From NCBI GenBank assembly GCA_009103225.1, contig RHPI01002990.1, positions 549,988-574,914 on the forward strand: 24,927 nucleotides of DNA, in the 5' to 3' direction. Positions within the stretch are counted from its first letter, which is position 1; each line of letters opens with the position of its first letter. The notes beneath the pieces were generated by a model. The model made no database searches, was not told the origin of the DNA, and worked only from the letters and a program-made list of their open reading frames with translations. Origin of the DNA: Chlorokybus atmophyticus (lineage: Eukaryota > Plantae > Mesostigma and Chlorokybus algae). This document shows positions 4,465-24,925 of the stretch, piece by piece. The position numbers and the translations under genes are program-made.

Positions 4465-7400
4465 CTAGCGGTCTGTATGTAAGTCTGCTGCGGGATATTC
4501 AGATTCTTCCGCATGCGTAGATAGCGTTCGTGTGGATGCCTTCGCAAGGCTACTAGTCGCTGTATGCATGTTGTTGGCCGAGGCGGTAGCGGAATTGTGG
4601 CTGTCGTGCGACAACCGCGAACTCACCTGCGAGCTCACCTTGTGCCCAAGCCACTGCATCTTGGTCACGGTGTTCTTCCCGAGCGTGTAGGCCACCTTGG
4701 CAGTGAGGAGGATGGTGCCCAGCACCGGCCCGAACGCCTCCTGAAGCGCCTCGCCCAGGTCGCTGTCCTCCACCTGATCGTCATCCAACCCGCGCTTCTT
4801 CTTTTGGTAAGCCAGATACACCTCGCTGAACATCAGCGCCAGGAACATTATCACCGTCCTGCACAGTAGGATGAGCTGCGTGTTGTGTTGGGTAGGGGAA
4901 ACATAACGCCAACATCCGCATGCCAGCCGTGTTGCATGTAGGTGCCCATTCAATAGATCTTACGCCTGCTGAGAGTGTCACTGCACCGCAAGGCATTGAC
5001 GCACTCTGACTGTCATTGCATCACCGCACAACAAGTTCACTTGCAGGACCCAGGACATAGCAAATTGTGATGTGACAAGACGAAGTTGTGATGTGACAAG
5101 ACAAAGTTGCATCCCCAGGACAAACTCACCCAAAGTACGACACGGCAAAAGCAATGCTGAGCAGAGTGCTCGTGACGCTGGTGAGAGGGAGGAAGAGCAG
5201 CCACGCGATGTAGAGCAGGAGGCAGTTGCCGCTCCAGGCGAGCGTCTGCATGTTGTTGAGCTTGGGGCTGGAGTAGGGGACGGCGTGGACGTTGAGGGCC
5301 ATGCACATGGCGGCGACGGCGAGGGCGATCAGGACCTGCTGCTGCGTGCCGAGCACGCCGAGGAAGACCGCGATGAGGATCAGCACCAGCTTTTCCAGCG
5401 TCACGATGAACTCCCAGAAGAAGGCGCTGCGCTTGTAGCCCGTGTACAGGAAGCCGTAGTACTTGACTGTGTGCTCGCTCTCCAGCTTCATGCGGCGCTG
5501 CCACAACATGAGGTATGCGCCAATGGGTAAACCCAGGCCGAAGAGTATAATGCCGGGAATGCCCACAGCGAGAACCTGCAAAGACAACGACAATCAATGC
5601 ATAGCCATAGCCACACTTGTCATCTCATAGTTGCCCTAACAAACCACAAGTAGTGTGTAACGGGTAATGGCTTACCATTGTCAAGTGTGTCCCAGTGTAG
5701 CATTTGTCATTGATGTATTGATCCCAGTACGTGCCAACAGCACGCTCATTGGCATCATATGGTACTCCCAGCGAGTCGATCTTGCGGCAGGCGAAGAGAG
5801 AAATCAGCTGCTGCGTAACTGCGGGCCACAGGAAGAACTCCACCACCATGAAAGTAACAACAAACCTGCACCCGCCACACCACATGAGTCAGACTTCGAA
5901 AAAACCAAAAAGAGTTTGTACATATCTTGACCACCGCTGCCCCCTGCATACACACAAGGATGCATGCACGGCGACTCACCCTCGGATGTACTTGCGAAGC
6001 TCCGGAGGATTGGCCCTATGGCGAAACCGGAACTTTGCAAACCAATAAACCAACAGCCATATGCCCGCAGGAGCGAGGATGCCGGCAATGGGAAGCAGGG
6101 CATATATTAGCACCAACTGATAGTACTTGTTCAGTGTGCCTGAGTTGTTCATTAGGCAGTAGGATGATATGATGCCGCTCCTGCAAGTCCGCCAGGCCAG
6201 TCAGCGAAAGCACACATGTGTTGCGCAGTTGCCGATGGCAGCTGCACAGCTAGTCTGCAGAGGCAAACATACCCGAGTGATGATGTTGAGGACAAAACCG
6301 TCACAGCCGTATTCACAAAGCCGGGAAAGTTGAAGGACACACCAAACGCGATTGATGTCACCTGTATGTACGTGACAATGACCTGCAGAGTTGCAAATGA
6401 TTAGAAACAGTCCAAAGTGCACGCAATGTGCCACGCACAAGAAAAGTGATGCTGCAACGTGTTGATGACAGATCACCAACCTTGCACATGGCCTGAACGG
6501 CTTGCCCGAGTGGTATCCGTCCATGTTCATCGGGTGTATCGTCCAGCTCTGTGGTCAGGGCGGCCTGTTTGCCAATGAGTGTCAGACCAAGACTCCCAAG
6601 CCGAATGTACAGCATGCTATGGTAGCCAAGATTGCGTACTTACCCTTGTGATGAGGACGATTGCGACAAAGGTGATGAGAGTAATGCCCGTGTATGCAAG
6701 CGCATTTACAACTTTGGAACTGCACTTCTTGCACTGGAAGTTGCTTGTTCCACCGCTGGATTCCCAACCGTCCCTGCACACCCCGCAAAGATTGCCTGCA
6801 TAGCTGCGCACACAGGTTGAGTAAGCTCGTCTGCAACCAGCAACCTGCAATGGTAACACGATGCAGCTGCCAGCTGGCTAGACATTAGCACAGATTGCAA
6901 CAACAAAGGTTGAGAATGCAATTTTGTGCAGGTCGGTGCATGCTGAGATATGCATGCTTACCCGTCGCTGCACTGCTGGACTTGCTCCCAACTTCCATTG
7001 CGAACAAGGCCCTCAAGTACCACAGACCGGTTGTGATATGAGCAAGCATCGTTGTTCGGACATTGATGAAATTGGAACGAGCGTTCGGCAGAGTGCCAAT
7101 AGCCATCAACAGGTACCACGACAGACCCTCCCAAACAGTCGGCGCCATCGGGACACACTTCACATGAGAAGTTGGTGGGATTCCATGAAAAGAGGGGCTG
7201 CTCGCAGTACGTGCACAGCGTGTTGTCGTCGTTGCGCACTTCTCCAAGCAGGCAAGGTCTGATGGTCACACTGATGCCCACAGGTGGCAGGATCGGGTAA
7301 TCGAACGCTCGTAGCTGGAGAGAGCGGACACCCGGCACGGATACAATGGCCACATTGCTGAAGTTTGCCACCCCTTGCTGTGCTGCAGTAAAAGTTTGGC

Positions 7401-10400
7401 CTGCAAACATGTAACATACTATGAAGGGTTGGCCTTAGTGTATCAGAAGAGGCATACATTCAACAATGACCCTGCGCACAGACCGTCCAAGCGGCCACTG
7501 CTGTTGGTATACTCCGCATAGAACACCAGTTGACTTTTGTTGCCGGCCGACACAACTTGGCCGAGAGCGTCGATGATGGTAAGGGTCAGGTTGGAGAGGG
7601 GCCGCGTGCTCGGTTGGGCTGAGTAGTTGTCTGCGGCTGGCTGGAACTCAGCTGGATCTGTTGCCAGTGTTGGACCATAACCATTGATAGCAAGGTTGCC
7701 GGTCTGCACATATGAGCGCACAGACATCAGTGCTCCTGTGTCAAGTGACGTGCTGCTTCAAGCCAAGATACGACAAGTAGTACACAGTATCAACTGAGCA
7801 TGCCCCCAGATGGTGACAACGTATCAGCCGCAATGCCCCGACAGAGTTTCATGAGTTGGTATGCAGGCGATGCAGGCAACCAGTGACAACACTAACACAT
7901 ACCCATTCGGAGCAGCCTGCTGCACTGCGTTGGCCACTGCAGGTGATGTTGGGTGTCAGAGTGCTAAGGATGGCACCGCCACCGCCGCCAACAGCCGTGT
8001 TATCACGAAAATCGCTGGAGTCAAAAGTTGCGCACACCCCAGTGGGTCCACAGGCCGCATACACACCACCACCGCTTTGAGCACGATTGAACTCGAAAGC
8101 ACTATCACTGATGGTGATGTTTGCAGCACTATCGCAGTACCGACCGTCTATGTTGATTGCACCTCCGCTCTCAGATGCATTGTTTGAGTTGAAGGTTGAA
8201 CCCTGTCGGTTTTGTCACGTCAAATGATGCACTACTAACAGTGAGAGATTGACACTTCCAACTCGCATGTGCATCGCTTACAGTTATGGTTGTTGTCTCC
8301 CATGCTTTGCAAATAGCTGCAACTTGTGTACCAGCGCCGCCTAAGAACATGCCGCCACCATCCTGTAACATTGCTGGTCAGAAACACTGTGAAAATGAGG
8401 AGTAACTTCGCACGAAGCAGGAGCTCCTGTTACAGCAGGTTGAAAAATGGCAACATGCCTGGGATGAGCAATTCTCAAATCGCGAGTCTGCCACTGTTAA
8501 GCTGCCTGTCTCATCAAAGACACCACCTCCCGAGACCTGTGCGGCGCATGCATATGTGATGTGTTGGTCTGAGTCGGATGCTTGAACAAATATCTCATCC
8601 CCAGGTCTGGAGTACTGCGATGCTTCAACACCATTCTTCAAACATCTTGTGAGTGCCACGCAGGGAATCCTTGTGTGCCCATAGGCATACCTGAGCTGTA
8701 GCTTCCGTGAAGTTGCACCCAGTGCACGTAACCGTGCGTTCAGAAGCACCTATCTGGTTCTGTAGGGTGACAACGCCCAGGTCCTACAAACCATCAGCAT
8801 AACCCAGTTCAGGCACTCACCAACAACAAGAACTCTCGATGCACTTATGGTTGTTGCGCGCAATCATTACGTAGACTTACTGAGTATGTGCCTGCGCTGA
8901 TCCAAAGAGCGCCTCCTGATACCTGCAGTGTTGCAAGTTTGAGCATGATCCATACAGCCGGTCTCGCAGCTGTACAACAGAGATGCATCGTTATCACCCA
9001 CACACCGCCGTGCTCACCGATGCAGAGTCTTGAAAGAAGGTGCAATTGGTCAAGGCAGCCACAGCTTGATTTGCGATGCCACCGCCACGCGGCTGGGAAG
9101 GTTATGATGTTAGTGGTAATAACAATAGGTGGTGTGTTTTTCGCACAACTGCGCCCTCAAGCTGTGCTGTGTTGCAGTGCCATTATATCAATAGAAACAG
9201 ACACAACACGCACCGCAGTGTTCTGAACTAAGCGATTGCGCACAACACGCAAAACGGCTGTGCCCGCGCTAAATATAGCACCTCCAAATCGCTGCAAGCG
9301 CAAGACAGGCACGAGTTAGTGGCTTCACGTCAATAAGCAACCATACTGCAACCATACCAAACAAGATGGTGATGCTTCCACTGACCCCAGCAACATTGCG
9401 AGACAAAGTTGTATCGCGCAAAGTTATATCGCCTTCACTGTAGACCGCTCCACCATCCAGTGACGCATTGTTTGTCGTGAAGTTGCTTGCAGCCACCACC
9501 ACGTTATTGCCAGAGATCGCCATCAATGCACCACCAGTCTGCTCGCAGAGCAATGCGTTCATCAGTCCAGTCGCCGAAAAACTCTTGAGCCTAATCCAGC
9601 AGCCACTACTGTATGACAACCGCACTTACCACAGCTGCGTTGTCGACAAATGTGGCATTGTTTATGTTACAGGTGCTTGAAATGAAATAGATTGCACCTC
9701 CACCCTGTTGGCACAAATAACGTCAGTGGTGGCAGCTGCTGTTAATGCTAGCAACAAAACATGAACACTTAGCGTTGCTTCCTGCCATTATGCAGCATGG
9801 ATGGTCACAGCGCCGCCATATCAGATCAGATTACTTACGGGTGATTGATTGCGCCTGAAGGTAGTGTCAGTGATGTTGGCCCCGAGTTCATTTATATACA
9901 ATGCACCGCCAGTATTAATTGGATTGCCATTGCAGGTGTTGCTGTCAAAAGTGCAGCGCACAATTGTTGAACTGAATTGCCCCACGAAAGCACCCCCAAC
10001 CTGTAAAGCACAGTCATGAGGCGCTGTTACGAAAGCAAACGCATACGCAGTAACTGCACTCACGTTAGAGGCAGTGTTCTCAGTAAAAATGCAATCCGTC
10101 AAGACCATCGTATTGTCATTCTGAATAGCGCCGCCTTGTAAAGCATTGTTTTGATGGAAAGTACAGGCAGCAACGCTTGCTGTGCCAGCTGCCAGTAACA
10201 AAGCACCTCCACCCTGTAACACAGACGCAATTCGTATCCAGCAGTTAACCATGTAGGACGAAATGAAATCAATCAAGGTGACATCACCTTGAGCAAACAG
10301 GTAGTGTACGAAGTCAAGTTGAACACATGTACAATAACAAGCACAGCAAGTTATTTAGTACAAAAGCTGGTGACACAAGTGCAGGGAGATGCAGGGACCG

Positions 10401-12306
10401 TTAGAACCCTGTTGCAAACACGCCAACCTTCACACTTACAAAAGGCGCGAAGTTGCGAGTAAACTGTGACCCCGATAGGTCTAGTGAATTTCCAGAAGCG
10501 TAGACGGCTCCACCAACACCGCCTGAGGCAGAAACCTCATTCCCAGTGAACGTGCACCCTTGAATGGTAGCTGAACCTTTTAGAACATACACTCCTGAAC
10601 CAAACTGCACAGACAACGAGACATGAGCTTCTTGACACTGAATACGATGTTGACAGCTACAAAAAGAACTCACCGGGGCTTGGGTGTTGCCTTCAAAGTG
10701 ACTCGCACTGAGAAACAACGATCCGGCGGTTTGAATAGCACTATTGATGTTATTGGTGAAGTTGCTGCTGTCAATAATCAGGGTGCCTGCACTATTGGTG
10801 ACAATGGCACCTGAAGCATCCAACTGTGACACACATTTGAAGTTAATGGTGGAAGGTGAGCACCTTCCACACATTCACATGCGAGCGCTTGAACCTGCTT
10901 ACCAACGCTGTGTTGTCGGTAAACTCCGAGGTTCGTATTGAGAGCCTGCCTTTGCCATTCCAAAGTGCCCCACCCGCAGATGCACTGTTTCGCTGGAAAT
11001 TGCACCCAGTGACGTTTATGCGCCCCTCGTTGACAACAACACCTCCAATTGCCTGAGCAAAGCACATATGGCAACCATACTATCACAAGTACTCAACTGT
11101 TAAGTTTTGCCAGATTAATGGAGGGTGAGCTGCTACCAGACTATGCTGAGGTACCAGCTACAAACTTGTTCCTAAACCCTCTCTTAACATACACATGGAG
11201 TGGCGGATGCTTACACTAGGAGAACTGAGGGGCAGAGAACCACTGCAATGGATGCTGCCATGATATGTGATGGGGTAACTTAACTACCTTGTGTGTGCCA
11301 AGTTACCAAGTACTTACTTCTCACCAGTCACGATGTACATAGTTACAGTCTATGTGCCCCGCTAACCTGAGCTCAATGCATGTTGTGTCTCTGTGCACAA
11401 CTGCGAGGATATGCATTTCTTGAACACTGACTCAAAGGCGAACACAACCAATCACCCATGTGACGTATACATATGCCCTTAGCTCACCGGCGCATCAGCA
11501 CTGTTGCCTAAAAACTCAGATGTGTCCAGCACCGCAGTTCCTGTGTTGTAAAGTGCAGCAGCCCCTGTGTCACCCTGCAAGAAGAGGACTATTGATAACA
11601 GCCAGAAAGTATGCCTGCATGACAAACAGCACACTTGTTGGCAAGAAACCTACCGCATTCGTATTGGACATGCGCAAGAATGAACACCGCAAAATGCTGA
11701 TTGTTCCTGCATTGATAATGGCCGCAGAGGAAGCCTGCACACGTAAATCATGCCTGTTGTCAAAACAACGTTTCTCTCAATCTATTACAGTGATACGTTT
11801 CAGCTTTGTGTTTACACCATTGAGCACGACAATGCACAACTCGCCCTTGTAATGTTGAAGCCAGAAAGCTGGAGGTCCTGAAGCTGAAGGTCACCAGCTG
11901 CAACAACTGAAAGCACCGCACCACCACTGGTGCTTGTTAGCACCCGCCGTGGCTGCTGCCTGTCTCCTCTGACAATGACGCTGGAGCTCACTGTCAATAT
12001 CTGAGCTGTGGCAATGTCCGCGAGGACCACAATCTCCTTGACCGAACCATCTGCAAGAGCGGCGGCCAACTGGCTGCTAGAAGAGGCCGTCGCTGCAAGC
12101 AGACATAGTATGCAAGCGTTACATTGTTGTGTACACCGGCCAAGAAGGAGTTGCACACAAGGTCAGGTCAGTCAAGAGTTTGTTGACTGCTGTCCTACAA
12201 TACCTGTTTGTGCTGTTGCTGAGCGGAAAGCAGCTGCTAGCTGTAGCAAAAGCGTGCAGAGAAGGAATCTACCCTGCTGAGACGCAACCCCTCTACTTTG
12301 ACCCAT
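4465..12306 (-). CDS. Large surface/membrane protein (~1427 aa, 24 exons): signal peptide, polymorphic-membrane-protein-like parallel beta-helix repeats (GGA[IVL]...FxxN), Cys-rich furin/EGF-like region, then a multi-pass (~7 TM) C-terminus
   Basis: Phase-consistent exons: 12306-12204 (signal peptide MGQSRG...FLLCTLLLQLAAA), 12092-11845, 11574-11488, 11052-10903, 10823-10674, 10604-10440, 10213-10064, 10000-9839, 9538-9386, 9291-9214, 8922-8881, 8783-8691, 8536-8459, 8362-8282, 8202-7903, 7703-7484, 7400-6962, 6803-6644, 6564-6481, 6382-6273, 6180-5980, 5865-5676, 5575-5130, 4858-4465 (sum 4284 nt). Motifs include GGALW/GGAIQ/FxxN repeats, CxxC...CPxGAxC...GYW, GYAGNLCGVC, KVIVTYIQ and YGFLYTGYK...FWE. 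Two introns are modelled with GC donors. The last exon may contain a further intron (GTGAG donors near 4635). Confidence 0.88.
5063..5108. repeat. Intronic 21-bp tandem duplication
   Basis: aattgtgatgtgacaagacga / agttgtgatgtgacaagacaa / agttg. Confidence 0.9.
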
Positions 12307-13459
12307 GCTGCACAAAAGAATTTTCAGGTGATAACAGCAAAGCTTAGTAAAAGCTGCATTGCATTGTGTCATTGCAGAACTTATGCAGCAGAGTCACATG
12401 TCCAGGCTGTTGACCAGCTGGATGCATGTCTTGCATGGCTGCTTGGCGTTCAAGTTGTGACACGACATGAAAGCAGCCAACCAAGCTGCGCGAACGCAAC
12501 GTTGGCAGACCGAACACCCTAGCGCAAGTAAGCTCTACCTGACTTGCTATGCAGACATGCCAACAGCGCTCCCAACCATAAACCAGGCCGTACCGTCACA
12601 GCAAGAGCGCCCTGTTGACGGAAACTCACCTTCAAGCCACAAACCGCACCTTTCATGTCCTCGCCACCATAAGGAACCTCGCCGCAGCAGCAAGTCGGCA
12701 CACTCACTGCCGCCGTCACCGCCACAGCGGCAAGCAACGCTTCCAGTGATGGTCAAGCGACTCCATTGACCAAGCCAGCAAGGCAGGCCAACCCACCACG
12801 CCGCCGACTCACCAGACGACCTAACACATGCCTTTAGCCTCGCTAACACAGCCTGAGTGCACTCCCTTAGCAGGCAAGCTCCCACCACCCACGCCGCCCA
12901 CCCCGCTCACGCCTACACCAAGGCCGCTGCAAAGTCAAAAGCCGAATTTCTCGAACTTTTTGTTGTACCAGTGGTTTTTTCTGTCCAGCCTTTTGGCAGA
13001 GTTGTTATGGGAATTCCTACAGCATTGTTTACAGACACAGGGACAGGGCGTTTTTGGTCCGACTTTGTCCTCCTTCTCAAGGTTTTCCGTGTCTTCACGT
13101 GCGATGGTGGCTTGCATGTTATGACGGGAAGCAGCGGGGGTCACTCATAACTATCGCGTTTAACTGCGTGATCCTCCGTCGTCCTCGCATGCTCCGGTGG
13201 CAGCCGACAAGATTACGCGGACGTTTGGCATTATCACCTTTCAGATCGGCGGAAGGCGCGCAATGTACCTGCAAGAACCGCCGATGGATGCCAGAGCCTC
13301 TGCTCAGTGCAGTGTGCACACTGCCGAGCGCTTCGGAGACAAAGAATTGGCGACCGGTCACCGGTCTACACCCACCCTTGCCAAGCTGAACATGTTCAGC
13401 GACGTACCGTTGACGACACGGCACACAGATTCATGCAACAAGTACCACAATAGACAGTA

Positions 13460-13882
13460 CAGTCTACCCCGTTAAAGAGCATACTATTTATCCTCGGCTC
13501 TTGGCGGTGTAATTCTCTTGACGTCCAAGAGCATCATGCTCTTGGGTGTCAAGAGTATATATATTCTCTTGACACCCAAGAGGTTTCATCGCGCCCATCA
13601 CGCCCATTGCATCACGCGTGCTACGGCATTTTTGTAATTCTTGCAAGCTTTAGAGAGGGATATTTCAAGGTCGAGGGAGTAGCGCGCGACGGGTGTGGCA
13701 TAAAGCGTGACGCACGCGGTGACTATGGCGTGATGGGTAAGGTGTGACGCGCAGTTAGCGTGATCATTGCGGTTAAGCATAATCTCTTAGGCACCAACAT
13801 TTGCCTGTATTCCGTTTGGTAATTTCTATGCTATCAGCGGGGTTATTCTCCTGGAGCGAAGTCTCTTAGCGGGGGCAGACTG
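13460..13882 (+). mobile_element. MITE copy A, Tc1/mariner-like, non-autonomous (423 bp)
   Basis: TIRs CAGTCTACCCCGTTAAAGAG ... CTCTTAGCGGGGGCAGACTG, flanked by TA on both sides (13458-59 and 13883-84); no ORF; related copies at 15667-16856. The superfamily is inferred from the TA target duplication and CAGT termini. Confidence 0.85.
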
Positions 13883-13998
13883 TACTGGTTTATCAGATTT
13901 ATTGTAGCAAGTTGAAGATGGGCATCATCTTGACTATTGATCAGCATCAGTTAACTTGACTGTACCGTATAAATGTGTTTAATGAGCATGCTTACTTA

Positions 13999-14560
13999 TT
14001 CGGCTGTTGACCATGTTTGATGACGCAGTAACTATAGTGTGTAATCAATTAGCGTTAAAGGGTAGAGTGGATTAGTTAGAACAAGGGTGAGTAGTGGCGG
14101 CATGTCTTTGGGGTATGGGGCCTGCCCCGACCTCGTACCGCCAAAAACGCGGCCGTTTTAATCACTAACTGTGCCGCAATTGCACTAAATCCCTAGCAAT
14201 TTGGGTCGCCGTTGGTAAGCGGTTGCCGCTGAGATATTTGAGCATCTTTTACGCATCTTTGCAATGATTGACCATTTTGCTGCCTTTTTGAGCAACTGGC
14301 TGTTGTCACCGTTGCGATCCCATTTGATCAATCTCATGTGTGACCAAATGGTGGCCTAACGATGCGATTTTTCGTTTAGTTGAATCTTAACGTTAAGGTA
14401 GTTCAGGTTAGCATTATTTTGATGGTCGTAACCTCTCTATTATCTACTAAAAATCGCAGCACGTACCGTGGCGTGAACGTTACGTTGATTATTAAGTTTT
14501 GAAACACTTACCAGCGTTTGCTAATCACATGGCACCATGTTGCGCCATATCGCCGCATAT
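13999..14560 (+). repeat. Left arm of a ~560-bp inverted repeat (5' end of outer element); partner at ~17165-17730
   Basis: ttcggctgttgaccatgtttgatgacgcag... is the reverse complement of ...ctgcgtcatcaaacatggtcaacagccgaa (ends 17730). A hand count gave about 28 differences in ~530 bp (~95%), mostly transitions. Confidence 0.95.
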
Positions 14561-14613
14561 GTAATCATATGGCACCATGTTGGTCCATATCGCCGCATAT
14601 GTAATCATATCGC
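14522..14613 (+). repeat. 40-bp tandem repeat (2.3 copies) built from 10-bp subunits
   Basis: taatcacatggcaccatgttgcgccatatcgccgcatatg / taatcatatggcaccatgttggtccatatcgccgcatatg (37/40 identical) / taatcatatcgc. Confidence 0.93.
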
Positions 14614-14714
14614 AAAATTTTACTACACATCAGAGATATTGTGCATGTGGATTTGCACCTTTGCACGCCCTCATTGCTGGACTGTGCCGAGATGGTTCTT
14701 TTGGATGGCGACAA

Positions 14715-15347
14715 ATGCCAGGGCGGTTGATATGTTCCTGGTGTGTTGTTTCGTCATCCGCTATGACTTATGAGCAACATTGCGATTTGTCTCAGCATTG
14801 CGAATTGTGGGACGACTGCGATGATTTGCTTTCCTGTTGGCAAGATGCACAACGTAAGTTTGTCACGCGAATGCAATGTTGTTCTTTGTGCGGGCATGTA
14901 CAGTTTTACTCTGCTGCTGCTACTTATCGTCCAATGTATCGACGATCAGTATCCACCGTTGCACCATATGATTTGGCTAATGTTTTTATGTCCGATTATA
15001 CCAAGTGTGATAGTGATTACTACCAATGCCATCTATGTAGTCACGGGTCGGAGCGTTCCGGTTACATTGTATTACACAGCGCAGTGTACATTCGCAAGTT
15101 GTTGGAGATACATCCAATGGTAGTGCAGATGTTGTCCCTTGTTAACACGTCCATGGCGCTTTGCGACTTATATAACTCATACAGTTTCACTTCGGGCCAA
15201 ATTCAGCAGTTGAATATGATTAACGGTCCGTTTATCACTTGGGATGAGTTTACACATCAGAACCAACATGCCATCTTGTTGCTGGAGTTGTTGAGCGAGC
15301 TATTATCGTCCAACACTCTGGTTCAGAAATATCAGACCTTGGCAGAA
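14715..15347 (+). pseudogene. N-terminal fragment of the RepHel gene (Cys-rich region plus LxxLLxxNxxVxxY helix), cut off by the nested insertion
   Basis: ORF 14577-15410 (ATGs at 14715 and 14763) has CxxC pairs (CSLC, CHLC) and ELLSELLSSNTLVQKYQTLAE, like the LxxMLxxxNPYVxxF segment found N-terminal of Helitron Rep domains. It joins in frame to 17731 when 15348-17730 is removed (..TLAE|QPFGSDG..). The residues after 15347 are insert-derived. Confidence 0.75.
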
Positions 15348-15666
15348 CTAGCGGTGCGGCTGATTGGGCGTGTGACTGGGCCGGCCGGCCGGCCGGGAGG
15401 CCGGCATTAGGGCACAAAGACACATCACGCGCATTGTGGGCCATCAGCCGAGACTACATGCCTGCCGCGCATACCGAGTAGCCCGCCTGCCTCTCATTGG
15501 CTATGCGACGTTTATCAGCTATCGGCCATTCGATTTGTGTTAAACAAATCTCAACCTTTCAAAGCACATCCCCATATCGTGCAATTGCACAAAGTATGCG
15601 AATGAATAAAAGAAATACATTTTTACCACAACATGCACGGTGCACATATGCGTCATGTGCGTTATA

Positions 15667-16135
15667 CAGTCCACCCCCGCTAAAAGACTTTGCTCCAGGA
15701 GAATAACCCCGCTTGTAGCATGCGTTGTGAGATCACCAACGATGCTACAGGCAAATGTTAATGCTTCTGAGAATATGACTAACCGCGAAGAGCATATTAT
15801 TTTTCATGACATTTTTGCAAATGTAAGTGTGCATATTCTTAACATTGAGGGAGTAGCGCGTGACGGGTTTGTCATCAGGCGTAATGAGTGTGATGGACAA
15901 GGCGTGATGGGATACAGTGCAACACGTAATCAGCATAATGAGCGTGATGGCATAATAGACGTGACGTAATGCGCGTGATGTAACGGGCGTGATGGGCGTA
16001 TTTAAACTGCTTTATAGCATACAGATGCTCTTAATGTTTAAGAGCATATTACACTATTTATCGCCAAGAGCATAACCCCGCCAGGAGCAAACTATCTTTA
16101 AAAATAAACAGAATGCTATTAAAAGGGGTAGACTG
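15667..16135 (-). mobile_element. MITE copy B (469 bp), inverted relative to copy A
   Basis: TA|CAGTCCACCCCCGCTAAAAGACTTTGCTCCAGGAGAATAACCCCGCT ... AAAAGGGGTAGACTG|TA; both ends match the reverse complement of copy A's ends, and the CGCCCATCACGCCC motif is shared. Confidence 0.85.
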
Positions 16136-16186
16136 TACAATAAATGTTTCAATGTAATTAGGTACAACTATGTACCTTAAACTGTA

Positions 16187-16728
16187 CAGTCTACCTCCGC
16201 TATACAAATCACGTGTATCTTTCAGCTTTCATTCCATCATCGGGGTTATTCTCTTGGCGTTTACAGTACTATATACTATTTTATTCTTTACATAATATAT
16301 ATTCTACTAACAGGGGCATTGCGAAATAACCGTAAGCCACGTTATTATATTGTAACGTGGCATACATTAAATCAACAATAGCATTAAATCAACAATAGTT
16401 CAACAATGAATTGATTATTAATAGTATGTACGTAACTATATATGAGTCTATATATGAGTCTACGTAACTATATATGAGTCTACGTAACTACATGAGTCTT
16501 TTAACATGTTATGCTTATAATATTAAAATAAACATGTTATTAACGAGGTATTCCCCCGTAACAAGACTGAGCTCACTCAAAAGATTAACCTTCCGTTGTA
16601 GTCTTATTGCGTACAAAACTATTCCACTAACCGATGATACTTGCCTGTGAAACCATTAGTCTTCTGCAAATCTATGATCTCAACGGGGTTATTCTCATAA
16701 ACCGAAGTCTTTTAACGGGGATAGACTA
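16187..16728. mobile_element. Degenerate/composite MITE-family segment (copy C)
   Basis: Starts TA|CAGTCTACCTCCGCTA, contains CGGGGTTATTCTC motifs (16241, 16684) and a decayed TIR near 16543-16610, and ends GTCTTTTAACGGGGATAGACTA|TA. The internal structure is not fully resolved. Confidence 0.6.
16365..16499. repeat. Short tandem repeats: 17-bp duplication and ~20-bp minisatellite
   Basis: cattaaatcaacaatag x2 (16365-16398); acgtaactatatatgagtct-type units, about 3.5 copies (16429-16499). Confidence 0.9.
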
Positions 16729-16730
16729 TA

Positions 16731-16856
16731 TAGTCTACCCTTTTGTAAGAGCATACTATTATCCTCAAAAATCGTATGCTCTTGGACAGGGTTATGCTCT
16801 TGAACGTTAAGAGCATATATATGCTATAAGCGCAGATTCATTACGCCCATCACGCC
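16731..16856 (+). mobile_element. Truncated MITE copy D (left end only)
   Basis: TA|TAGTCTACCCTTTTGTAAGAGCATACTATTATCCTC...ACGCCCATCACGCC matches the left end of copy A, then switches abruptly to a Helitron-3'-like block. Confidence 0.75.
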
Positions 16857-17164
16857 TATTGGTCGGGCCGGCCGGCCTGTCGGCAGTCAACCTACATCAC
16901 ACATCCCGCGTTAGGGCCATCACACGGCACCCGCGACTGCAGGGCTGCGCGGCAGTATGTGCGACCCGCCTGCTTCTCATTGGCTAGGCGGCGAGGACAA
17001 GCGTTACACCGTTAGATCTGCTCAAACACAATCCTGGCCGTCCAAGGCACATCCAATTGTTTAAGCGCTTGCCAATAAATGTAAAATTAAGCACAGTTCT
17101 GCATACATGGCCGCTTATGGCTGCATGTTGATCATTTTAATGTGTTACATTTTTAATATTGATA

Positions 17165-17730
17165 AATATGGTGCAATATGGTGCAACATGGTGCGATATG
17201 ATTAGCAAATGCTGTTAAGTGTTTCAGAACTTAATAATTAACGTAACGTTCACGCCACGGTACGTGCTGCGATATTCAGTAAATAATACCGAGGTTACGA
17301 CCATCAAAATAATGCTAACCTGAATTACCTTAGCGTTAAGATTCAACTAAACGAAAAATCGCATCGTTAGGCCACCATTTGGTCACGCATGAGATTGATC
17401 AAATGGGATCGCAACGGTGACAACAGCCAGTTGCTCAAAAAGACAGCGAAATAACCAATCATTGCAAAGATGCGTAAAAGATTCTGAAACATATCTAAGC
17501 GGCAACCGCTTACCAACGGCGACCCAAAATTGCTAGGGATTTGGTGCAATTGCGGCACAGTTAGTGGTTAAAACGGCCGCGTTTTTGGCGGTACGAAGTC
17601 GGGGCAGGCCCCATACCCCAAAGACATGCCGCCACTACTCACCCTCGTTCTAACTAATCCACTCTACCCTTTAACGCTAATTGATTACACGCTATAGTTA
17701 CTGCGTCATCAAACATGGTCAACAGCCGAA
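17165..17730 (-). repeat. Right arm of the ~560-bp inverted repeat (5' end of the nested element)
   Basis: Reverse complement of 13999-14560. Confidence 0.95.
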
Positions 17731-20700
17731 CAACCATTTGGTTCTGACGGCATCCCCACTGTCGGTTCATCTACTATTCGTAGCATTGTGTCTCGTGCAC
17801 AGGATCGTAATCCTTTGAACATTGCTGGTGAATCAGCATACACATACGTTTTAACCACTTTGTTGCCATTTCCTTCGCGCAGCACAGTTGAAGTCACAGT
17901 GGACACCATGTTGCGCGTTGGACATATGTCGCTGCGTGAGCCTTGTTTTCCTCTTTTGCTACACATGGATACAGGTGGTGTGTACAATAATCCTGGTTTA
18001 ACTGTTGAGTCTGCTCTGTTTCCCATGTTGTTTCCGCACAATCGTGGGTTCTTTGATGGTAATGTGTACAGCAGACTGTCAGACTATGTCAAGTTCCGTC
18101 TTACACAATCGTTCTCAGTTTTCACATTGTACAAGCCTTATTTGCTGTTGATGTACCAAATCCGTCAATCACTTCTTACAGTCACAAAGTGCCGCGAAGT
18201 TGCTGTGGACGCTGATATTAAAAAGTTCCTCAAACAACGACCTACTGCCACAATCAACGATGCCATCAAAAACGCTGTAAAATTTCGTGTCCCTGGTGAC
18301 ATCATTGGATCTCCGAGTTTGCATCGACAAAAGTTGAGTGAGCTGCTGTGTCTGGTTGAGCATTGGGGTATGCCTCATCTCTTTGTCACCATGACTGCAG
18401 ATGAAGTGTCCAGTACCAAACTCCCTGAGATCATTGATTTGCAGAATGTTCTCCACAATGTCTCCACGCAACTTAGTTGGCGCGATGCCCCTGTGGAGTG
18501 CGCACGTTTGTTTCATCATCGGTTCAGCACCTTCCTTGAAAAATATATCATGCGAAAGGATATCCTTGGACGTGTGATGCACTATGTTATCAGGTATGAA
18601 ACACAACACTGTGGATCTTTGCATGCACATGTTATGTTGTGGTTACATCCCGACGATGTTAAACGAGTTTGCAGTGAAATCACTGCGTTAATCCCCGGAG
18701 ATTTTGACCATGCAAATCAGCAAATAATTGTACCAACTGATTGTAAACTGCGAGTCCTTTATGAATGTGTTGTACGCAAGCAAATGCACAAGTGTTCTGA
18801 TTTTGGCAGTGGCTGCAGAGCATTTGACAACAAGTGCGACATGGGCTTTCCGTATCCCGTACAACCAGATCGTCGACCTCAGTTCAACACAGAAACGCGC
18901 AGGTACGATTATTACAGACCACGCACTTGTGACCGCAATGTTGTTCCCACACATCCAGTGCTTTTATTGTTGTGGGGTGCTCATTGTAATGTGTTGCAAG
19001 TCACTGACAGTCATTGGAGCAAGTATTTAGTCAAGTACACAACTAAAATGGAACCTTGTGGCACTGTTGATGATGCATTAGACACCAATGCACTCGGTTT
19101 GCAAGGATTGACTGTTAACGAATTGCGCATATTGAACACAATGTACTTGTCCAAACCCATTGCTCCAGCTGAAGCTGCTTTGATATGTTTAGATATTCCC
19201 ATCATGCAAATGTCGTCCAATGTAACATATGTTGACACGCGTTTGCCTAACAATCGTTCTCGCATAGTGAACAGTCGTGCACGGACAGTAATTGTGCATC
19301 CCATTCATCGTTATTGTGTCAGGCCTGACGAGGTAGAAAGAGTCACAATGTACAACTACTTTCGACAGTACATGCACCGAGATGGAGACACTGTGCCACA
19401 TAACACTGTGCGTACTCTAAGAGACAGACTGAATGCATTCGTTTATGAGTTAGCTGTCCCGCGCATCATCAGATTCACGGATTACCATCCTGTACACAGC
19501 ACTGAAGGGTTTTGTTTCAATTTGCTTCTTCAGCGGGTTACTTTTCGCTCTGAAGTTGATTTGATTTCTTTGAACAACCAATCACGCACTTACTATGAAG
19601 AATGTGTGTTGCGGGGTTTCATTAACAACACAAACCGCAGTTTGTTGACACATGTCACGCGCTATGCCGAACGTCATCTATACAATGATGTTAAGATTCA
19701 CCATATGACGAATGCCATGATGCAGACCACTGATAATGCTATTAATGCCTTGTCTATGGCTGCAGCTGGTCCGACAAATAGTCAAACTGCACCAGAACGT
19801 ACCACGCAGTATCCAACAGCTTCATCATCCAATCCTGCATCTCCAGCTTCAACTGTGACAACGGACTCAGATGTATCGGCGCCAATGTTTCAAGGTACAT
19901 TGAATGTTGAGGAGTTTGCGTTTGCGAACAATCTCTCTTTGACCAGCCAGCAAGAATGCACCGCAAGTAGTATCATTGCAACACCGGTTGGTCTACATGT
20001 GATATCTGGTTGTCCAGGAACAGGCAAAACATTTTTGACCAAATTCATCACTCACAAGTTGCGCGTTGCTGGGATACCTGTTTTACTCAGTGCTACAACT
20101 GGCGCTGCGGCTTTGCGGCTCAGCTCATCAGCTTCAACTGTACATTCCAACTTCGCAATACCTGTCAACGGTCAGCAACTCCGGTTTGTAACTGCTATGG
20201 ATGATGCTTACAAACTGTTACATCATTGTCGAGTATTTATTATTGACGAGTTTTCCATGATGACATCGCGGTTGTTTGACTTGGTGATGCTGCGCTTACA
20301 GCAAGTTCATGGACCAGAATTTCTACAAACAATCGGCGTTGTATTGGTTGGTGACCACAAGCAACTGCCAGCAGTTTGTGGACACAAAGTCCAAGACACA
20401 TCGCAGGTTTGCCACAAATGCCATATTTCTGCATCACAGAGGTGGCCATTACGTAAGCAACATTTTTTATCTGTTTCAGTGCGTCATGCTTCAGACCCTC
20501 TGTTTGCTGAATTCTTGATTCAGATTCGTTCTGGCATACCCAGTTCAACAGAGATAGCAGATGCGTTAGGTGGCTGTCTGGTCACTTCGGAGTACTTACA
20601 ACAGTTACCAAGTGATGCAACCATATTGTGTTCACATGTACAAGACACACTGGCTTTCAACAGCATGATTGTGAGACAACGTTTTGCCGCCGATACCATT

Positions 20701-21204
20701 GTGCCAATACAAATTACTTCTAATGCAGTGAACGTGCCCGAGCTACACGACTGGATTCACAAGCCCAAGTTCAACTTATTACCTTCAGTCGCCAAGGGAG
20801 CAAAGGTGTTGGTTTTAGAAAACGTTTCACTGCAAGATGGTGTAGCCAATGGGTCTTTGGGAACAGTGACGCAGTTTAGATACTACAAAGGTAATGTGAG
20901 CAGTATACAAGTTACATTTGACCATTTGGCAGACTCCATGTGGATGCGCCGAACAATACAGCAAACAACAACGTTTCAAGGCAAAACGTACTACAAAGCT
21001 GTGTTTCCTTTGCAGCTAGCGTATGCAATGACAGTGCACAAGTGTCAAGGTGCAACGCTGCAATCAACTACTGTTGTCCACATGCAGGAAGCTTTTGCTC
21101 CTGGATTGTGGTATGTGGCGTTGTCGCGCGTGACAAACAGGGCCTATTTACGGTTGACGCGTTTACCGCGCCCTGAAGAGATGACGCCCGTTCCTGGGGA
21201 TTGA
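17731..21204 (+). CDS. Helitron-like RepHel, main part (1157 aa, intronless, no stops): HUH Rep endonuclease plus PIF1-family SF1B helicase; HLE2/Helentron type
   Basis: Rep motifs PHLFVTMTADE (I), RYETQHCGSLHAHVMLW (II, HUH) and KYLVKYTTKMEP (III, two Tyr), plus DAPVECARLF and FPMLFP. Helicase motifs GCPGTGKT, IIDEFSMM, LVGDHKQLPAV, SVRHASDPLF, FPLQLAYAMTVHKCQGATL and YVALSRV. The frame is open upstream of the listed GTG to the insertion junction. Confidence 0.95.
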   Translation, partial: QPFGSDGIPTVGSSTIRSIVSRAQDRNPLNIAGESAYTYVLTTLLPFPSRSTVEVTVDTMLRVGHMSLREPCFPLLLHMDTGGVYNNPGLTVESALFPMLFPHNRGFFDGNVYSRLSDYVKFRLTQSFSVFTLYKPYLLLMYQIRQSLLTVTKCREVAVDADIKKFLKQRPTATINDAIKNAVKFRVPGDIIGSPSLHRQKLSELLCLVEHWGMPHLFVTMTADEVSSTKLPEIIDLQNVLHNVSTQLSWRDAPVECARLFHHRFSTFLEKYIMRKDILGRVMHYVIRYETQHCGSLHAHVMLWLHPDDVKRVCSEITALIPGDFDHANQQIIVPTDCKLRVLYECVVRKQMHKCSDFGSGCRAFDNKCDMGFPYPVQPDRRPQFNTETRRYDYYRPRTCDRNVVPTHPVLLLLWGAHCNVLQVTDSHWSKYLVKYTTKMEPCGTVDDALDTNALGLQGLTVNELRILNTMYLSKPIAPAEAALICLDIPIMQMSSNVTYVDTRLPNNRSRIVNSRARTVIVHPIHRYCVRPDEVERVTMYNYFRQYMHRDGDTVPHNTVRTLRDRLNAFVYELAVPRIIRFTDYHPVHSTEGFCFNLLLQRVTFRSEVDLISLNNQSRTYYEECVLRGFINNTNRSLLTHVTRYAERHLYNDVKIHHMTNAMMQTTDNAINALSMAAAGPTNSQTAPERTTQYPTASSSNPASPASTVTTDSDVSAPMFQGTLNVEEFAFANNLSLTSQQECTASSIIATPVGLHVISGCPGTGKTFLTKFITHKLRVAGIPVLLSATTGAAALRLSSSASTVHSNFAIPVNGQQLRFVTAMDDAYKLLHHCRVFIIDEFSMMTSRLFDLVMLRLQQVHGPEFLQTIGVVLVGDHKQLPAVCGHKVQDTSQVCHKCHISASQRWPLRKQHFLSVSVRHASDPLFAEFLIQIRSGIPSSTEIADALGGCLVTSEYLQQLPSDATILCSHVQDTLAFNSMIVRQRFAADTIVPIQITSNAVNVPELHDWIHKPKFNLLPSVAKGAKVLVLENVSLQDGVANGSLGTVTQFRYYKGNVSSIQVTFDHLADSMWMRRTIQQTTTFQGKTYYKAVFPLQLAYAMTVHKCQGATLQSTTVVHMQEAFAPGLWYVALSRVTNRAYLRLTRLPRPEEMTPVPGD

Positions 21205-21249
21205 CGTTGATAATTGGTAAGTCCAGTTAGTGTTGCGCAATGGTGTGAC

Positions 21250-21513
21250 ATATGTTGCATCATTTGGCGATATGATACGATGTTGCGCAACGTTGTTTGA
21301 TATCGACGCATATCGCGAGTGTTTGAGCATGTTAGATCGATGTTGCACAACATTGCACTACATGCTGCCAAGTTGGACGATATTGCTTTAGGCGACATGG
21401 TACGCTGTTGCGCAACGTTGTTTGATATCAACGGATATCGCATGATGTTTGTGCATGAATGAACGATGTTGCAAAACATTGCGTTATATGGTTCCATGTT
21501 CGACGATATGGAA
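21250..21513 (+). repeat. Degenerate 10-bp-periodic array
   Basis: tatgatacga tgttgcgcaa cgttgtttga tatcgacgca tatcgc..., with a near-duplicate block (tgttgcgcaacgttgtttgatatc) at ~21281 and ~21406; same unit type as 14522-14613. Confidence 0.85.
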
Positions 21514-21970
21514 CCATATCGCGTAAGATGAACTGCATCTCATGACCACACTGTACGCATGTACGGTTTGATGACATGGCACATTCAGTTGATTGCCGTA
21601 TCACCCGTCATCCAACCATGCTTTGTATGCAATCATCTCCTCCACCCCATCAACTCTTCTGACCAATCCCATGGCGGCATGGCTTAGCACGTGGTGTTCT
21701 GCCGACACAGACCCTTTTCCTTGCCACGCAGATATACATAGGCAATATATCTGGCGCTGCTGTAAATGTACACCAGTTGAAACATCAAGTCGCAGGGCAC
21801 TGTGCATACATGCCTGTCGCATCACCTGCCTCAGACACCTGCCCATCGTCGAAAACTGTCACCTCAGCCAGACACAGGTAACAACGTGGCTCAGTTGGCC
21901 TCTGTTTGATCTCGAACCTGTGAGTCATTAGTTGGCGAGCGTTACATTGACAATGCACTTGGGTGACAGC

Positions 21971-23419
21971 ATGGACTTTAACGAAAAAGACCTGTTCGAG
22001 AGGCTCCACGCTCAAATTTCCAATGACGAACCTGGCTCTAAGCGTCCACGTACCAGTAGCTCTGGAGGTGATGCGCCTGGTCGTCCGCTGACAGCGAAAC
22101 AACTGGTAGCATGTGACTCAGCAGGAATCACTCCCGACAAGCTTGAGGGGCTATTCACCAAGCCAGAGGCCGATAAGTTAATTCGCCCTGCCAAAGAGAG
22201 AGCTCAAGAGTTTCGCATAAACCACGGGGACTCTATTGCAACTGGTGAGAAGCGGAATCTGTACACTGACACACTGTGGTGCATGTGTTAACTGATGCAA
22301 GTATGTGTAAACATGCATCTACTACCTCAGAAAGCTCGGCATCGACATTTCTGATGACCTGAAGCGCCAAGTAGCTTACAAGCTGTGGGACACTCTGATG
22401 CGCAAGGACAACCCAGAGCTTCCTGATAATGCAGAGCCAATTTACGCTAATCAGGTATGTATCAATGTGACACTGGGTCATTGGCCAAATACCTGTACTT
22501 AACAGATGTTTCACAGGTGTTCGAGCTGGTTCACATTCGCAAAGTTTGCAACTGGGAGACAGCGCGTTTCATGTCGCAAGGAAAGGCAGAAAAAATCATT
22601 GAGCAAATCAACAAAGCAGACCCAAGGGAAGCTCCAGTAGCAAATGTTGCTGCCAATGAGGTGTGTGGTTATCCAAGTTGATGATGGGATTACTGTGCTT
22701 GCCAAGATTAGTCGCGATGCGTGAGAATGCTATGGTTGCGTAGCAGAGTTCAACAACAATGGGCACATCAAGCCAGAACCCATGCAGTCGCTCCATCTTT
22801 TGTTACACTTCTGTTTTTGCATTGGCTCCCTTTGTTCATATCCTGTACCCGTGGTCTGTTGCCTTGCTTCTACTTCGCTACGCATATATGTTCCATATTC
22901 AACATCAATCTCGGATGTGTACTGCAGCATTCATAGTACCATTGTTCTTTGCAGGTAAACGATGAGGTCCAGATGATCCTGCGATCCTCGGCAGCAAGAA
23001 ACAGCATCAATGCCAACACCAACATTCGCGCTTCTGCACGTCTCTGTGCGCAACCCATAAACACAGGTGTGAAGTTTATCTACAAGTTGACGCATGTGGC
23101 AACACAGAAAGTATATATCGGTCAAAGTAACCACCCAGGTCGACGTTATAAGGAACATCGTAGACACCCGCCTAAGAAAATGTTGCCTGACTTAGATAGC
23201 AGTAAACCTTTTGAAGAGCAAGTGCAGTTGGAAGTATTAGATAAAGGACATTGCAAGGCGCGAATAGATTGGTTAGAAGCTATGTATATCGCCCAATACG
23301 ACTCTCGAGGGTGCAAAGGTTACAATATGGATGAAGGCAACCCAGCGAGGTTCAAAGCATTTTGGGCGCGCCGACGTAGTGGTAGCGGTTTTGGCAATAA
23401 GAAAAAGAAAAAAGAGTGA
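21971..23419 (+). CDS. Probable multi-exon gene: N-terminal region of unknown function and a C-terminal GIY-YIG endonuclease domain
   Basis: Exons ~21971-22260 (MDFNEKDLFERL...KRPR...), 22331-22454 (KLGIDISDDLKRQVAYKLWD...), 22517-22660 (VFELVHIRKVCNW...) and 22955-23419. The last two junctions are clean phase-0 GT-AG. The first needs a weak phase-2 donor; the strong GTGAG at 22245 is out of phase. Confidence reflects the exon model. Confidence 0.55.
22955..23419 (+). CDS. GIY-YIG endonuclease domain (terminal exon, or a standalone ORF from ATG 22973)
   Basis: FIYKLTHVATQKVYIGQS (GIY/YIG pair), RRYKEH (conserved Arg/His), WLEAMYI (metal-binding Glu), GYN (conserved Asn); basic tail RRRSG...NKKKKKE resembles an NLS. 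Confidence 0.88.
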   Translation, partial: VNDEVQMILRSSAARNSINANTNIRASARLCAQPINTGVKFIYKLTHVATQKVYIGQSNHPGRRYKEHRRHPPKKMLPDLDSSKPFEEQVQLEVLDKGHCKARIDWLEAMYIAQYDSRGCKGYNMDEGNPARFKAFWARRRSGSGFGNKKKKKE

Positions 23420-23569
23420 AACTGGCTGCTGTTTGAGTAGGTCACCATGTGTGTTGGACAGTTTGTGTGACACCATGCTTTGGTGTCGATATAATCAATG
23501 GGTGCATATTGGTGGTGAGCTTCATAAATGTACGTATGCTACGTATGCAAGAACTCGTCATGCGACACT

Positions 23570-23665
23570 GCCCCATACCATTCCATATCATAACATATGG
23601 TGTCACAGCGATTGATATGCCAACATATGATGTCATATGGCAAAATGTCGCGCGACGTCAATGGA
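23570..23665 (-). repeat. Degenerate 10-bp-periodic array, reverse orientation
   Basis: The minus strand reads cattttgcca tatgacatca tatgttggca tatcaatcgc tgtgacacca tatgttatga tatggaatgg; same family as the 14522 and 21250 arrays. Confidence 0.75.
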
Positions 23666-24925
23666 CATTGTGAGTTCCCTGTGCGTCATGTTAACACACG
23701 AGCAAAACGGGTTCCATGATACAGGTCTACTCAGGGGGGGGGGTGGCTGCGAAGGCCCAGCGCCAGCAGCACCGGTATTGTGTGTGTCAACATCCTCATC
23801 ATCGTCACTGCTGCTGAGTTCATATACAGGGAAATCGGGGAGCTCTACACCACGTGGTGGGCGCTGCATAAAAATAAGTTGAAAGCGGCGGCAGAAAGGA
23901 CACTCAACTTGAGGGTGAGATCCTGTGCGCAGCTTCTTCAAGCACTGACGGCACAGTGTAGCTCCGCAACATGGCATTGGTAACAACACTTCCACTGGCT
24001 TCTGCTCGCAACAGATCCCGCATGTGTTGTCTTCACTGTCTACCACGCGCTTGCCCTTGTAGTCCTGGCGCACATGTTGCTGCATTTCTTCGGTTGTTGC
24101 TGCTTCACGCAACAACGGGGCAACTGTGCAGAGGTAGGTACAAAGCTTCTCCCATAGTGTTTGGTATAGTTGCAGTTGCAGCTGCCTTTTAACATCTCTG
24201 CGATTGAGGAGCGATACCTGGCACACCAACCAATGAACACCAAGGTGTTGCATTTGTTGATAATTGTCATAATTGTAATTGTTCAGTACCTGTCCGTCAA
24301 GGTCGATCTCTTTCAACATGTATTTTGCCAAGCTGTCCAACTCCTTTCTGGTGACTTCCAGTTCCTGCTGGAAGCTCTCGAACTGCACGCCATTGGGTTC
24401 AACACGCTCACGAAATCGCCAGTTTGCCGTTTGAAGACGCAGGACGCTTGTCAACTCTGAGATCTACAACAGAATGTCAGTTGCTGGAAAATCTAACAGT
24501 GCAGCAACACACACCTTTTTTTTTTGTGCAGCAATTGTCTGGTTGGCTTCTCCAATCTGGCATTGCAGGCGCGCCAATCTTGCATCATTACGCTCATTGT
24601 GTTGCTGCAACTGTGTGGCCCTGCGCTGAACTTCTGTCAGCTGCTTGCGTAAACCCACGATGCTTGCTGCGTCTGCGTTTTTGACACTTTCTGTCATTTT
24701 AACGTGCTCAGCACGCTCTTCGTGTAATGCACGCTCCAGGTCAGCAGAGCGTTGTTCTGCAGCAGCATGGCCTGCACGCAGACCATTGATTTCACTGATC
24801 ATTTTCAACAGCTTTGCAGCGATCTGGGGATCAGGCTGTGTCTGGTTGCGGCGTAGCTGCTCTGCTTGCTTCAGGTTACGCTCGCGAAGGACTGTGTTCT
24901 CGTCAACTAGTTTGAAATCTGCCAA
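23633..24925 (-). CDS. Coiled-coil plus RING-finger protein (putative E3 ligase); 5' end at or beyond the window edge; spliced
   Basis: Heptad-rich exon 24925-24515 joins through a 51-nt GT-AG intron (24514-24464) in frame to ISELTSVLRL.... RING-like CGIC-x13-CC-x4-CRQC-x13-CPFC, with Ala where His is usual, then an acidic/Pro-rich tail. Further small introns are possible (e.g. ~24289-24218). The ORF begins at TTG, and the preceding codon is cut by the window edge (xTG). Confidence 0.75.

Follow-up and report, generated by a model that had tools for sequence, protein, structure and literature searches.

We analysed a window of 24,927 nucleotides from the streptophyte green alga Chlorokybus atmophyticus (contig RHPI01002990.1, positions 549,988 to 574,914 of the forward strand). 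The part studied belongs to a disrupted rolling-circle transposon of the Helitron2 type (HLE2) and forms its rear half. Behind its RepHel gene lie, on the same strand, a gene ending in a GIY-YIG nuclease domain and, convergent with it, a gene with a RING finger (Table 1). We read region 21971–24925 as the accessory half of this transposon, with a companion nuclease and a likely RING cargo, at a probability of about 0.65.

The longest piece of RepHel is an open reading frame (ORF) of 1138 amino acids. The motifs LHAHV and YLVKYTTK are readable in it, and the Rep domain lies upstream of the PIF1-type helicase, as in the Helitron2/HLE2 group of the Helitron superfamily. No Pfam match to an apurinic/apyrimidinic (AP) endonuclease or OTU domain was found in this ORF, and the AP nuclease that marks Helentrons is thus missing from it.

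Table 1 Features of the Chlorokybus element, its nested relative and the accessory genes (window coordinates).
Feature	Position	Strand	Details
Host element 5′ end and first 10-bp-phased SATATS array (14546–14606)	13999–14640	+	Begins about T/TCGGCTGTTGACC; phased run of 6 hexamers
RepHel gene, N-terminal part, cut by nested insertion	14577–15347	+	ORF 14577–15410
Nested non-autonomous relative, 2.4 kb	15348–17737	− (antisense)	Defines the family 5′ end and one 3′ end type
RepHel ORF, 1138 amino acids, Rep HUH and PIF1-type helicase	17788–21204	+	Pfam Helitron_like_N 3e-23, PIF1 1.8e-19
Second phased array with 126-bp tandem duplication, between RepHel and nuclease gene	21230–21530	+	Tandem Repeats Finder row 21266–21509; run at 21249
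Nuclease gene, exon 1, KRPR nuclear-localisation-like motif	21971–22275	+	ATG 21971; open frame 21932–22288; end at 22244 (strong donor, out of phase) or 22275 (weaker, in phase)
Nuclease gene, exon 2	22331–22454	+	Acceptor ...ctacctcag/AAA, donor CAG/gtatgt; one base plus 41 codons
Nuclease gene, exon 3	22517–22660	+	Acceptor ...ttcacag/GTG, donor GAG/gtgtgt; 48 codons, phase 0
Nuclease gene, exon 4, predicted I-TevI-like GIY-YIG domain (exon residues 39–143), basic tail, stop included	22955–23419	+	Pfam PF01541; ORF 22949–23419
Third phased array	23584–23656	+	Hexamers at 23584, 23594, 23614, 23624, 23634; then 10-nt GC palindrome GTCGCGCGAC (23647–23656)
RING exon, RING at ORF residues 141–193, then acidic Ser/Asp tract	23633–24463	−	ORF 23633–24454
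Upstream helical, coiled-coil-like exon, open at window end	24515–24925	−	ORF 24464–24925

The nuclease domain and its gene

The exon 4 ORF matched Pfam PF01541 at 1.4e-5 (25.7 bits, cutoff 22.6), which places it in the GIY-YIG superfamily. It also matched the group I intron endonuclease model TIGR01453 at 1.3e-5, under the cutoff of that model, and its matches to PHROG homing endonucleases reached 7.6e-9. An unrestricted search with HMMER against 1.84 billion representatives gave 264 relatives at E ≤ 0.001, the best of them 41% identical. In an alignment of 44 sequences (A1), the window nuclease has Y54, G56, R64, H68, E108 and N124, all invariant or nearly so, and the Tyr of the GIY strand is kept in FIYKL.

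The AlphaFold2 model built from the alignment had a predicted local distance difference test score (pLDDT) of 82.8, with the core above 94. Its top Foldseek hits (rank 1–3) were the I-TevI catalytic domain (1mk0/1ln0; template modelling score 0.75–0.77, root-mean-square deviation 2.4 Å), and UvrC and SLX1 matched the model far less well. The family profile against the PDB gave 7.6e-10 for I-TevI and 0.017–0.55 for SLX1. By family scans, alignment, predicted fold and profile, exon 4 is thus assigned to the I-TevI class of catalytic domains. That the domain had its catalytic residues intact, as claimed from the sequence earlier, was confirmed by Pfam, the alignment and the predicted fold. An I-TevI-like DNA-binding module was not found: the domain is followed by ~25 basic residues, and exons 1–3 have no recognisable domain.

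The original prediction had this domain at the end of a co-directional, intron-containing gene. The domain and introns 2 and 3 stood: two GT..AG introns, 62 and 294 nt long, connect exons 2, 3 and 4 without a break in the reading frame. Intron 1 has two candidate donors; the one at 22276 (ACT/gtggtg) would be in phase and give an intron of 55 nt. A further ATG lies inside exon 4, at 22973. We regard the spliced gene model as plausible. Exons 1–3, searched one by one, had no domain in Pfam or NCBIfam and no recognisable homologue in the relatives; full-length annotated homologues more than 1.75 times the length of an exon were reachable solely through the unrestricted HMMER search. A likeness by eye between exons 1–3 and the N-terminal region of the Volvox proteins was dropped, with all BLASTP E values >0.4. 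A scan for bacterial promoters and terminators gave nothing useful and is not relevant to a eukaryote.

In three relatives, L001 (8044–8577), L009 of Volvox carteri (10366–11421) and L010 (6023–7162), the GIY-YIG domain lacks a start Met and directly follows an in-frame TGA, which closes an ORF of 75, 227 or 266 codons. The Volvox annotation (P0032) has a mini-intron that skips the TGA and the first beta strand, and its Pfam hit therefore starts at profile position 14. The TGA could mean read-through, a dead master copy or unrecognised splicing.

Linkage of RepHel and the nuclease in relatives

The closest RepHel proteins in public data were 31–38% identical to that of the window. Of six contigs carrying such relatives, four were informative (L001, L002, L003 and L010), and two (L004 and L011) ended too soon. 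In all four, a hidden Markov model (HMM) of the family placed a GIY-YIG domain from the same subfamily no more than 3 kb away from RepHel, at E values of 1e-30 to 1e-38. It lies downstream of RepHel on the same strand in L001 (1.6 kb), L002 (3.0 kb) and L010 (1.5 kb), and upstream on the opposite strand in L003 (1.15 kb). The domains of L001 and L002 were missed by tblastx at 1e-3 and detected by tblastn and the family HMM; the genes called at these two sites were spurious ORFs of the opposite strand, without any match in Pfam. The GIY-YIG gene of Volvox carteri (GCA_000143455.1) is multi-copy, with repeats 86–88% identical, and adjoins RepHel fragments.

The recurrence of the subfamily near RepHel in four of four relatives makes the nuclease a long-standing partner of the Helitron clade. 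The family motifs H.R.PP.RM..D and, at the C-terminus, FW..R are common to the window nuclease and the domains of L001, L002, L003 and L010, and absent from I-TevI. That these motifs and the catalytic residues are kept across such divergent RepHel lineages points to long purifying selection. As judged from sequence comparison, the nuclease is a conserved partner of a green-lineage Helitron2-type clade and no chance neighbour. Among these distant relatives, the GIY-YIG gene recurs beside RepHel, and the RING gene was found in none. A Mantel test that compared RepHel and GIY-YIG identities at five loci yielded r = 0.17 and p = 0.37; with lineages this star-like, the test is uninformative.

Helitrons frequently capture host gene fragments. 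The GIY-YIG exon may then be a passively captured fragment with no role in transposition, kept as Helitrons copy what they pick up. A published GIY-YIG case from Sphagnum was described as captured (PMC11417382), and the N-terminal exons of the window gene have no detectable homologue in the relatives. Against this stand the residues and motifs kept between RepHel lineages only 31–38% identical, and the recurring position of the GIY-YIG gene relative to RepHel. We consider passive capture scarcely probable.

Ten metagenome contigs (L014–L023) represent a single GIY-YIG locus, and the genes upstream of it, a DUF3431 gene among them, are identical. Several of them stop 300–700 nt past the nuclease gene, as expected at a repeat edge. 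The sole helicase trace among them was a fragment of 45 residues, downstream in L015. A metagenome scan with RepHel itself returned generic helicases alone (L024–L031).

Phased arrays and the 3′ end

Only at 14546 (six hexamers), 21249 (four) and 23584 (five) does the window hold runs of at least three [CG]ATAT[CG] hexamers spaced by multiples of 10 bp. Runs of three were reached in 0 of 300 shuffles. With these three sites in front of RepHel, behind RepHel and behind the nuclease gene, the latter is bracketed by element-type features, and the bracketing claimed in the original prediction was confirmed by the runs at 21249 and 23584. The last unit of the third array, TCATATGGCAAAAT, matches the last unit of the 5′ array (14605–14618) at 13 of 14 bases. 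Past this 14-nt end unit, the arrays have motif and phasing in common and no alignable sequence.

Helitron2 elements start with a 5′ T, have short asymmetric terminal inverted repeats and hairpins at both ends, and insert between T and T (PMC3627910, PMC11417382). The 5′ end of the host element was placed near 13999, because its front ~0.6 kb is common to the nested relative: 13996–14570 matches the antisense front of the latter (17156–17733) at 91–97%. The 5′ end inferred in this way starts with T. The 3′ module of the nested relative, GGCCGGCC...CAGCCGCACCGCTAG, lies at 15348–15406. A GC palindrome is present in the 3′ part of this relative, as is CAGCCG, the complement of CGGCTG at the 5′ end. 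The N-terminal piece of RepHel in front of the nested relative matched by tblastn the N-terminal parts of the RepHel relatives in L001, L002, L004 and L011. Just 5′ of the host element, at 13450–13990, there are direct and inverted fragments resembling the interior of the nested element (repeat families D3–D12 and I3–I7), probably another decayed relative.

From 21204 to the window end, the plus strand had no counterpart of the nested relative's 3′ module (query 15348–15362) and no reverse complement of the 5′ terminus; this query came from a relative sharing just the front ~0.6 kb with the host element and may not represent the host element's terminus. Both searches bore out the earlier statement that no 3′ terminus occurs before the window end, and the host element would then end beyond the window. 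A short GC-rich palindrome close to the 3′ end is typical of Helitrons, and the palindrome at 23647–23656 could be an alternative 3′ hairpin.

The convergent RING gene

The gene on the minus strand converges with the nuclease gene, and its start is outside the window. Its ORF aligned with the RING of TRIM32 at 4.7e-7, but has Ala where the canonical His is expected (CGATLC) and an additional Cys immediately in front. The Pfam RING models stayed under their cutoffs (zf-C3HC4_3 1.1e-4), and the Atlas leads for this ORF were all RING-type, with scores <0.9. An in-phase intron of 51 or 60 nt joins the two exons (donor AAG/gtgtgt at 24514, acceptor 24464 or 24455). From the earlier description as a convergent coiled-coil-RING gene, the convergence and the RING match held; the His ligand is replaced, and the coiled coil was judged from sequence alone, without a dedicated predictor.

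The RING ORF stop (23633–23635) overlaps the last array unit. From this overlap, we read the RING gene as a probable, lineage-specific cargo of the Chlorokybus Helitron family.

Just past the RING finger (23790–23830, minus strand; ORF residues ~205–225), a hydrophobic VYEL core is followed by SSSDDDEDVD. Judged by sequence alone, this stretch resembles the SUMO-interaction motifs of SUMO-targeted ubiquitin ligases.

Alternative readings of the locus

Several observations weigh against reading the region as the accessory half of the transposon. RepHel is disrupted by the nested element, and this copy is therefore non-autonomous and cannot move alone. The closest GIY-YIG relatives (41% identical, metagenomic contigs L005–L008) had no RepHel within 3.5–3.9 kb upstream, and at the locus of L014–L023 the upstream 10 kb were free of RepHel. 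When the GIY-YIG exon, the RING ORF and RepHel were used in word-based protein searches, no near-identical protein and no same-family copy came up. The strongest donor of intron 1 (CTG/gtgaga, 22245) misses the frame of the acceptor at 22330 by one base, so that this copy uses the weaker donor or carries a frameshift. The RING finger is without its canonical His ligand, and no RING or coiled-coil homologue was found at any RepHel or GIY-YIG relative locus examined.

Both genes might be ordinary host genes, downstream of a Helitron that ends shortly after RepHel (21204–21900). Such a boundary is compatible with the missing 3′ end and with closest GIY-YIG relatives that have no adjacent RepHel, and neither gene appears in protein collections as a repeated ORF. 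What makes this very unlikely is the same GIY-YIG subfamily at ≤3 kb from RepHel in all four informative relatives, together with the element-type phased array beyond the nuclease gene. The GIY-YIG family is also rare (264 hits at E ≤ 0.001 in 1.84 billion), and four chance adjacencies to RepHel are therefore implausible.

The second boundary to be weighed separates the two genes. The nuclease gene would be inside the element and the RING gene a neighbouring host gene, with the element ending near the last array and the GC palindrome. The last element-type feature does end at ~23656, close to a palindrome of the kind expected near a Helitron 3′ end, and no relative of RepHel or of the nuclease has a RING or coiled-coil homologue beside it. 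However, since the RING stop overlaps the last array unit, a terminus and a separate host terminator would hardly fit in there, and the 5′ terminus has no reverse complement near 23647–23656. We hold this separation to be unlikely. For the original claim that both genes lie inside the element, the result is divided: for the nuclease gene, it is supported by the array past the stop codon and by the four relatives, and for the RING gene, which none of the relatives carries, the claim was not shown.

Comparison with known systems

A GIY-YIG domain “captured and transposed” by a Helitron has been reported for HelenSM92, an HLE2 family of Sphagnum magellanicum, in the HELIANO paper (PMC11417382). 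This answers the question, previously left open, of whether GIY-YIG Helitrons had a precedent, and the pairing of RepHel and GIY-YIG as such is therefore already known. HelenSM92, like the Chlorokybus element, is a streptophyte HLE2 element with GIY-YIG besides RepHel. Its description, on which our comparison is based, is a single sentence and covers neither conservation between lineages nor the structure of the gene, the class of nuclease or a RING partner. What we add is that the nuclease is conserved over very distant lineages and is of the I-TevI class, together with its gene structure and the possible RING partner. Our literature search found no paper on Chlorokybus Helitrons and none on a Helitron-borne RING gene or ligase.

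In Helentrons, RepHel ends in an AP endonuclease and is often accompanied by deubiquitinase domains of the OTU or VTD type (PMC11417382), and their deubiquitinases are active enzymes of the ubiquitin system (PMC9741609). Both they and the Chlorokybus element are rolling-circle elements with a second nuclease and a ubiquitin-system enzyme, putative in our case. They differ in that the window nuclease is a GIY-YIG protein from a separate gene, in contrast to an AP-type nuclease fused to RepHel, and that the second enzyme is a putative RING ligase instead of a protease.

Among GIY-YIG proteins, I-TevI of phage T4 is the best fold and profile match, with the same catalytic Tyr/Tyr/Arg/His/Glu/Asn set. 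Unlike I-TevI, the window nuclease has no linker, zinc finger or helix-turn-helix, carries the extra PP.RM..D and FW..R motifs, and sits in a Helitron and not in an intron. SLX1 also has GIY-YIG and a RING-type finger, C-terminal in its case, in one functional neighbourhood, but in one polypeptide, whereas the window has two convergent genes; its profile match was weak and its structural match poor, and we did not assign the nuclease to SLX1. Penelope-like elements are eukaryotic mobile elements using a GIY-YIG nuclease as well. They are set apart by description, being retroelements with the nuclease fused to reverse transcriptase, whereas here it is a partner of RepHel.

Proposed mechanism and significance

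Helitron transposition is currently explained by RepHel alone (Helraiser model). In the Chlorokybus element, variable N-terminal exons would be spliced to the GIY-YIG exon, or the last exon would be translated from its own ATG. The nuclease may then nick the DNA of the target or the donor, allowing the single-stranded product of RepHel to be integrated or copied. By analogy, it would be the second nuclease of its clade and the counterpart of the Helentron AP endonuclease. More speculatively, the RING protein might work on the ubiquitin side as a mirror of the Helentron deubiquitinases: it would be an E3 ligase for a protein of the host or of the element, the reverse of OTU and VTD.

A wider proposal, which we put forward tentatively and think possible at best, is that the green-lineage Helitron2-type clade is a multi-gene system. 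RepHel would need a separate I-TevI-class GIY-YIG domain at the C-terminus of a fast-evolving second protein, spliced in Chlorokybus and made by TGA read-through in Volvox and the metagenomic relatives; the Chlorokybus branch would have added a host-directed RING ligase. If so, rolling-circle transposition of this clade would rest on two nucleases and a host-directed effector.

To our knowledge, the role of the extra Helentron endonuclease is still unknown. A second, unrelated class of nuclease kept beside RepHel across very distant lineages suggests that HLE2 elements have a genuine requirement for a second cut. The GIY-YIG nuclease is a small, separately encoded enzyme and easy to test. Should the RING gene truly travel with the element, it would complement the Helentron deubiquitinases, the ubiquitin system being a common battleground of transposon and host. 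For annotation, our results are a warning: such genes in streptophyte and chlorophyte genomes are transposon genes and not host repair genes.

Other features of the window

The window starts with a (TA)56 microsatellite (1–112). At 3050–3154, undetermined bases are followed by C24 (near 3131–3154), probably an assembly gap. On the minus strand, 5000–12200 holds a series of ORFs rich in repeats of the GGA(L/V)Y type, whose sequence suggests a large host gene split into exons and encoding a beta-helix repeat that resembles that of polymorphic membrane proteins.

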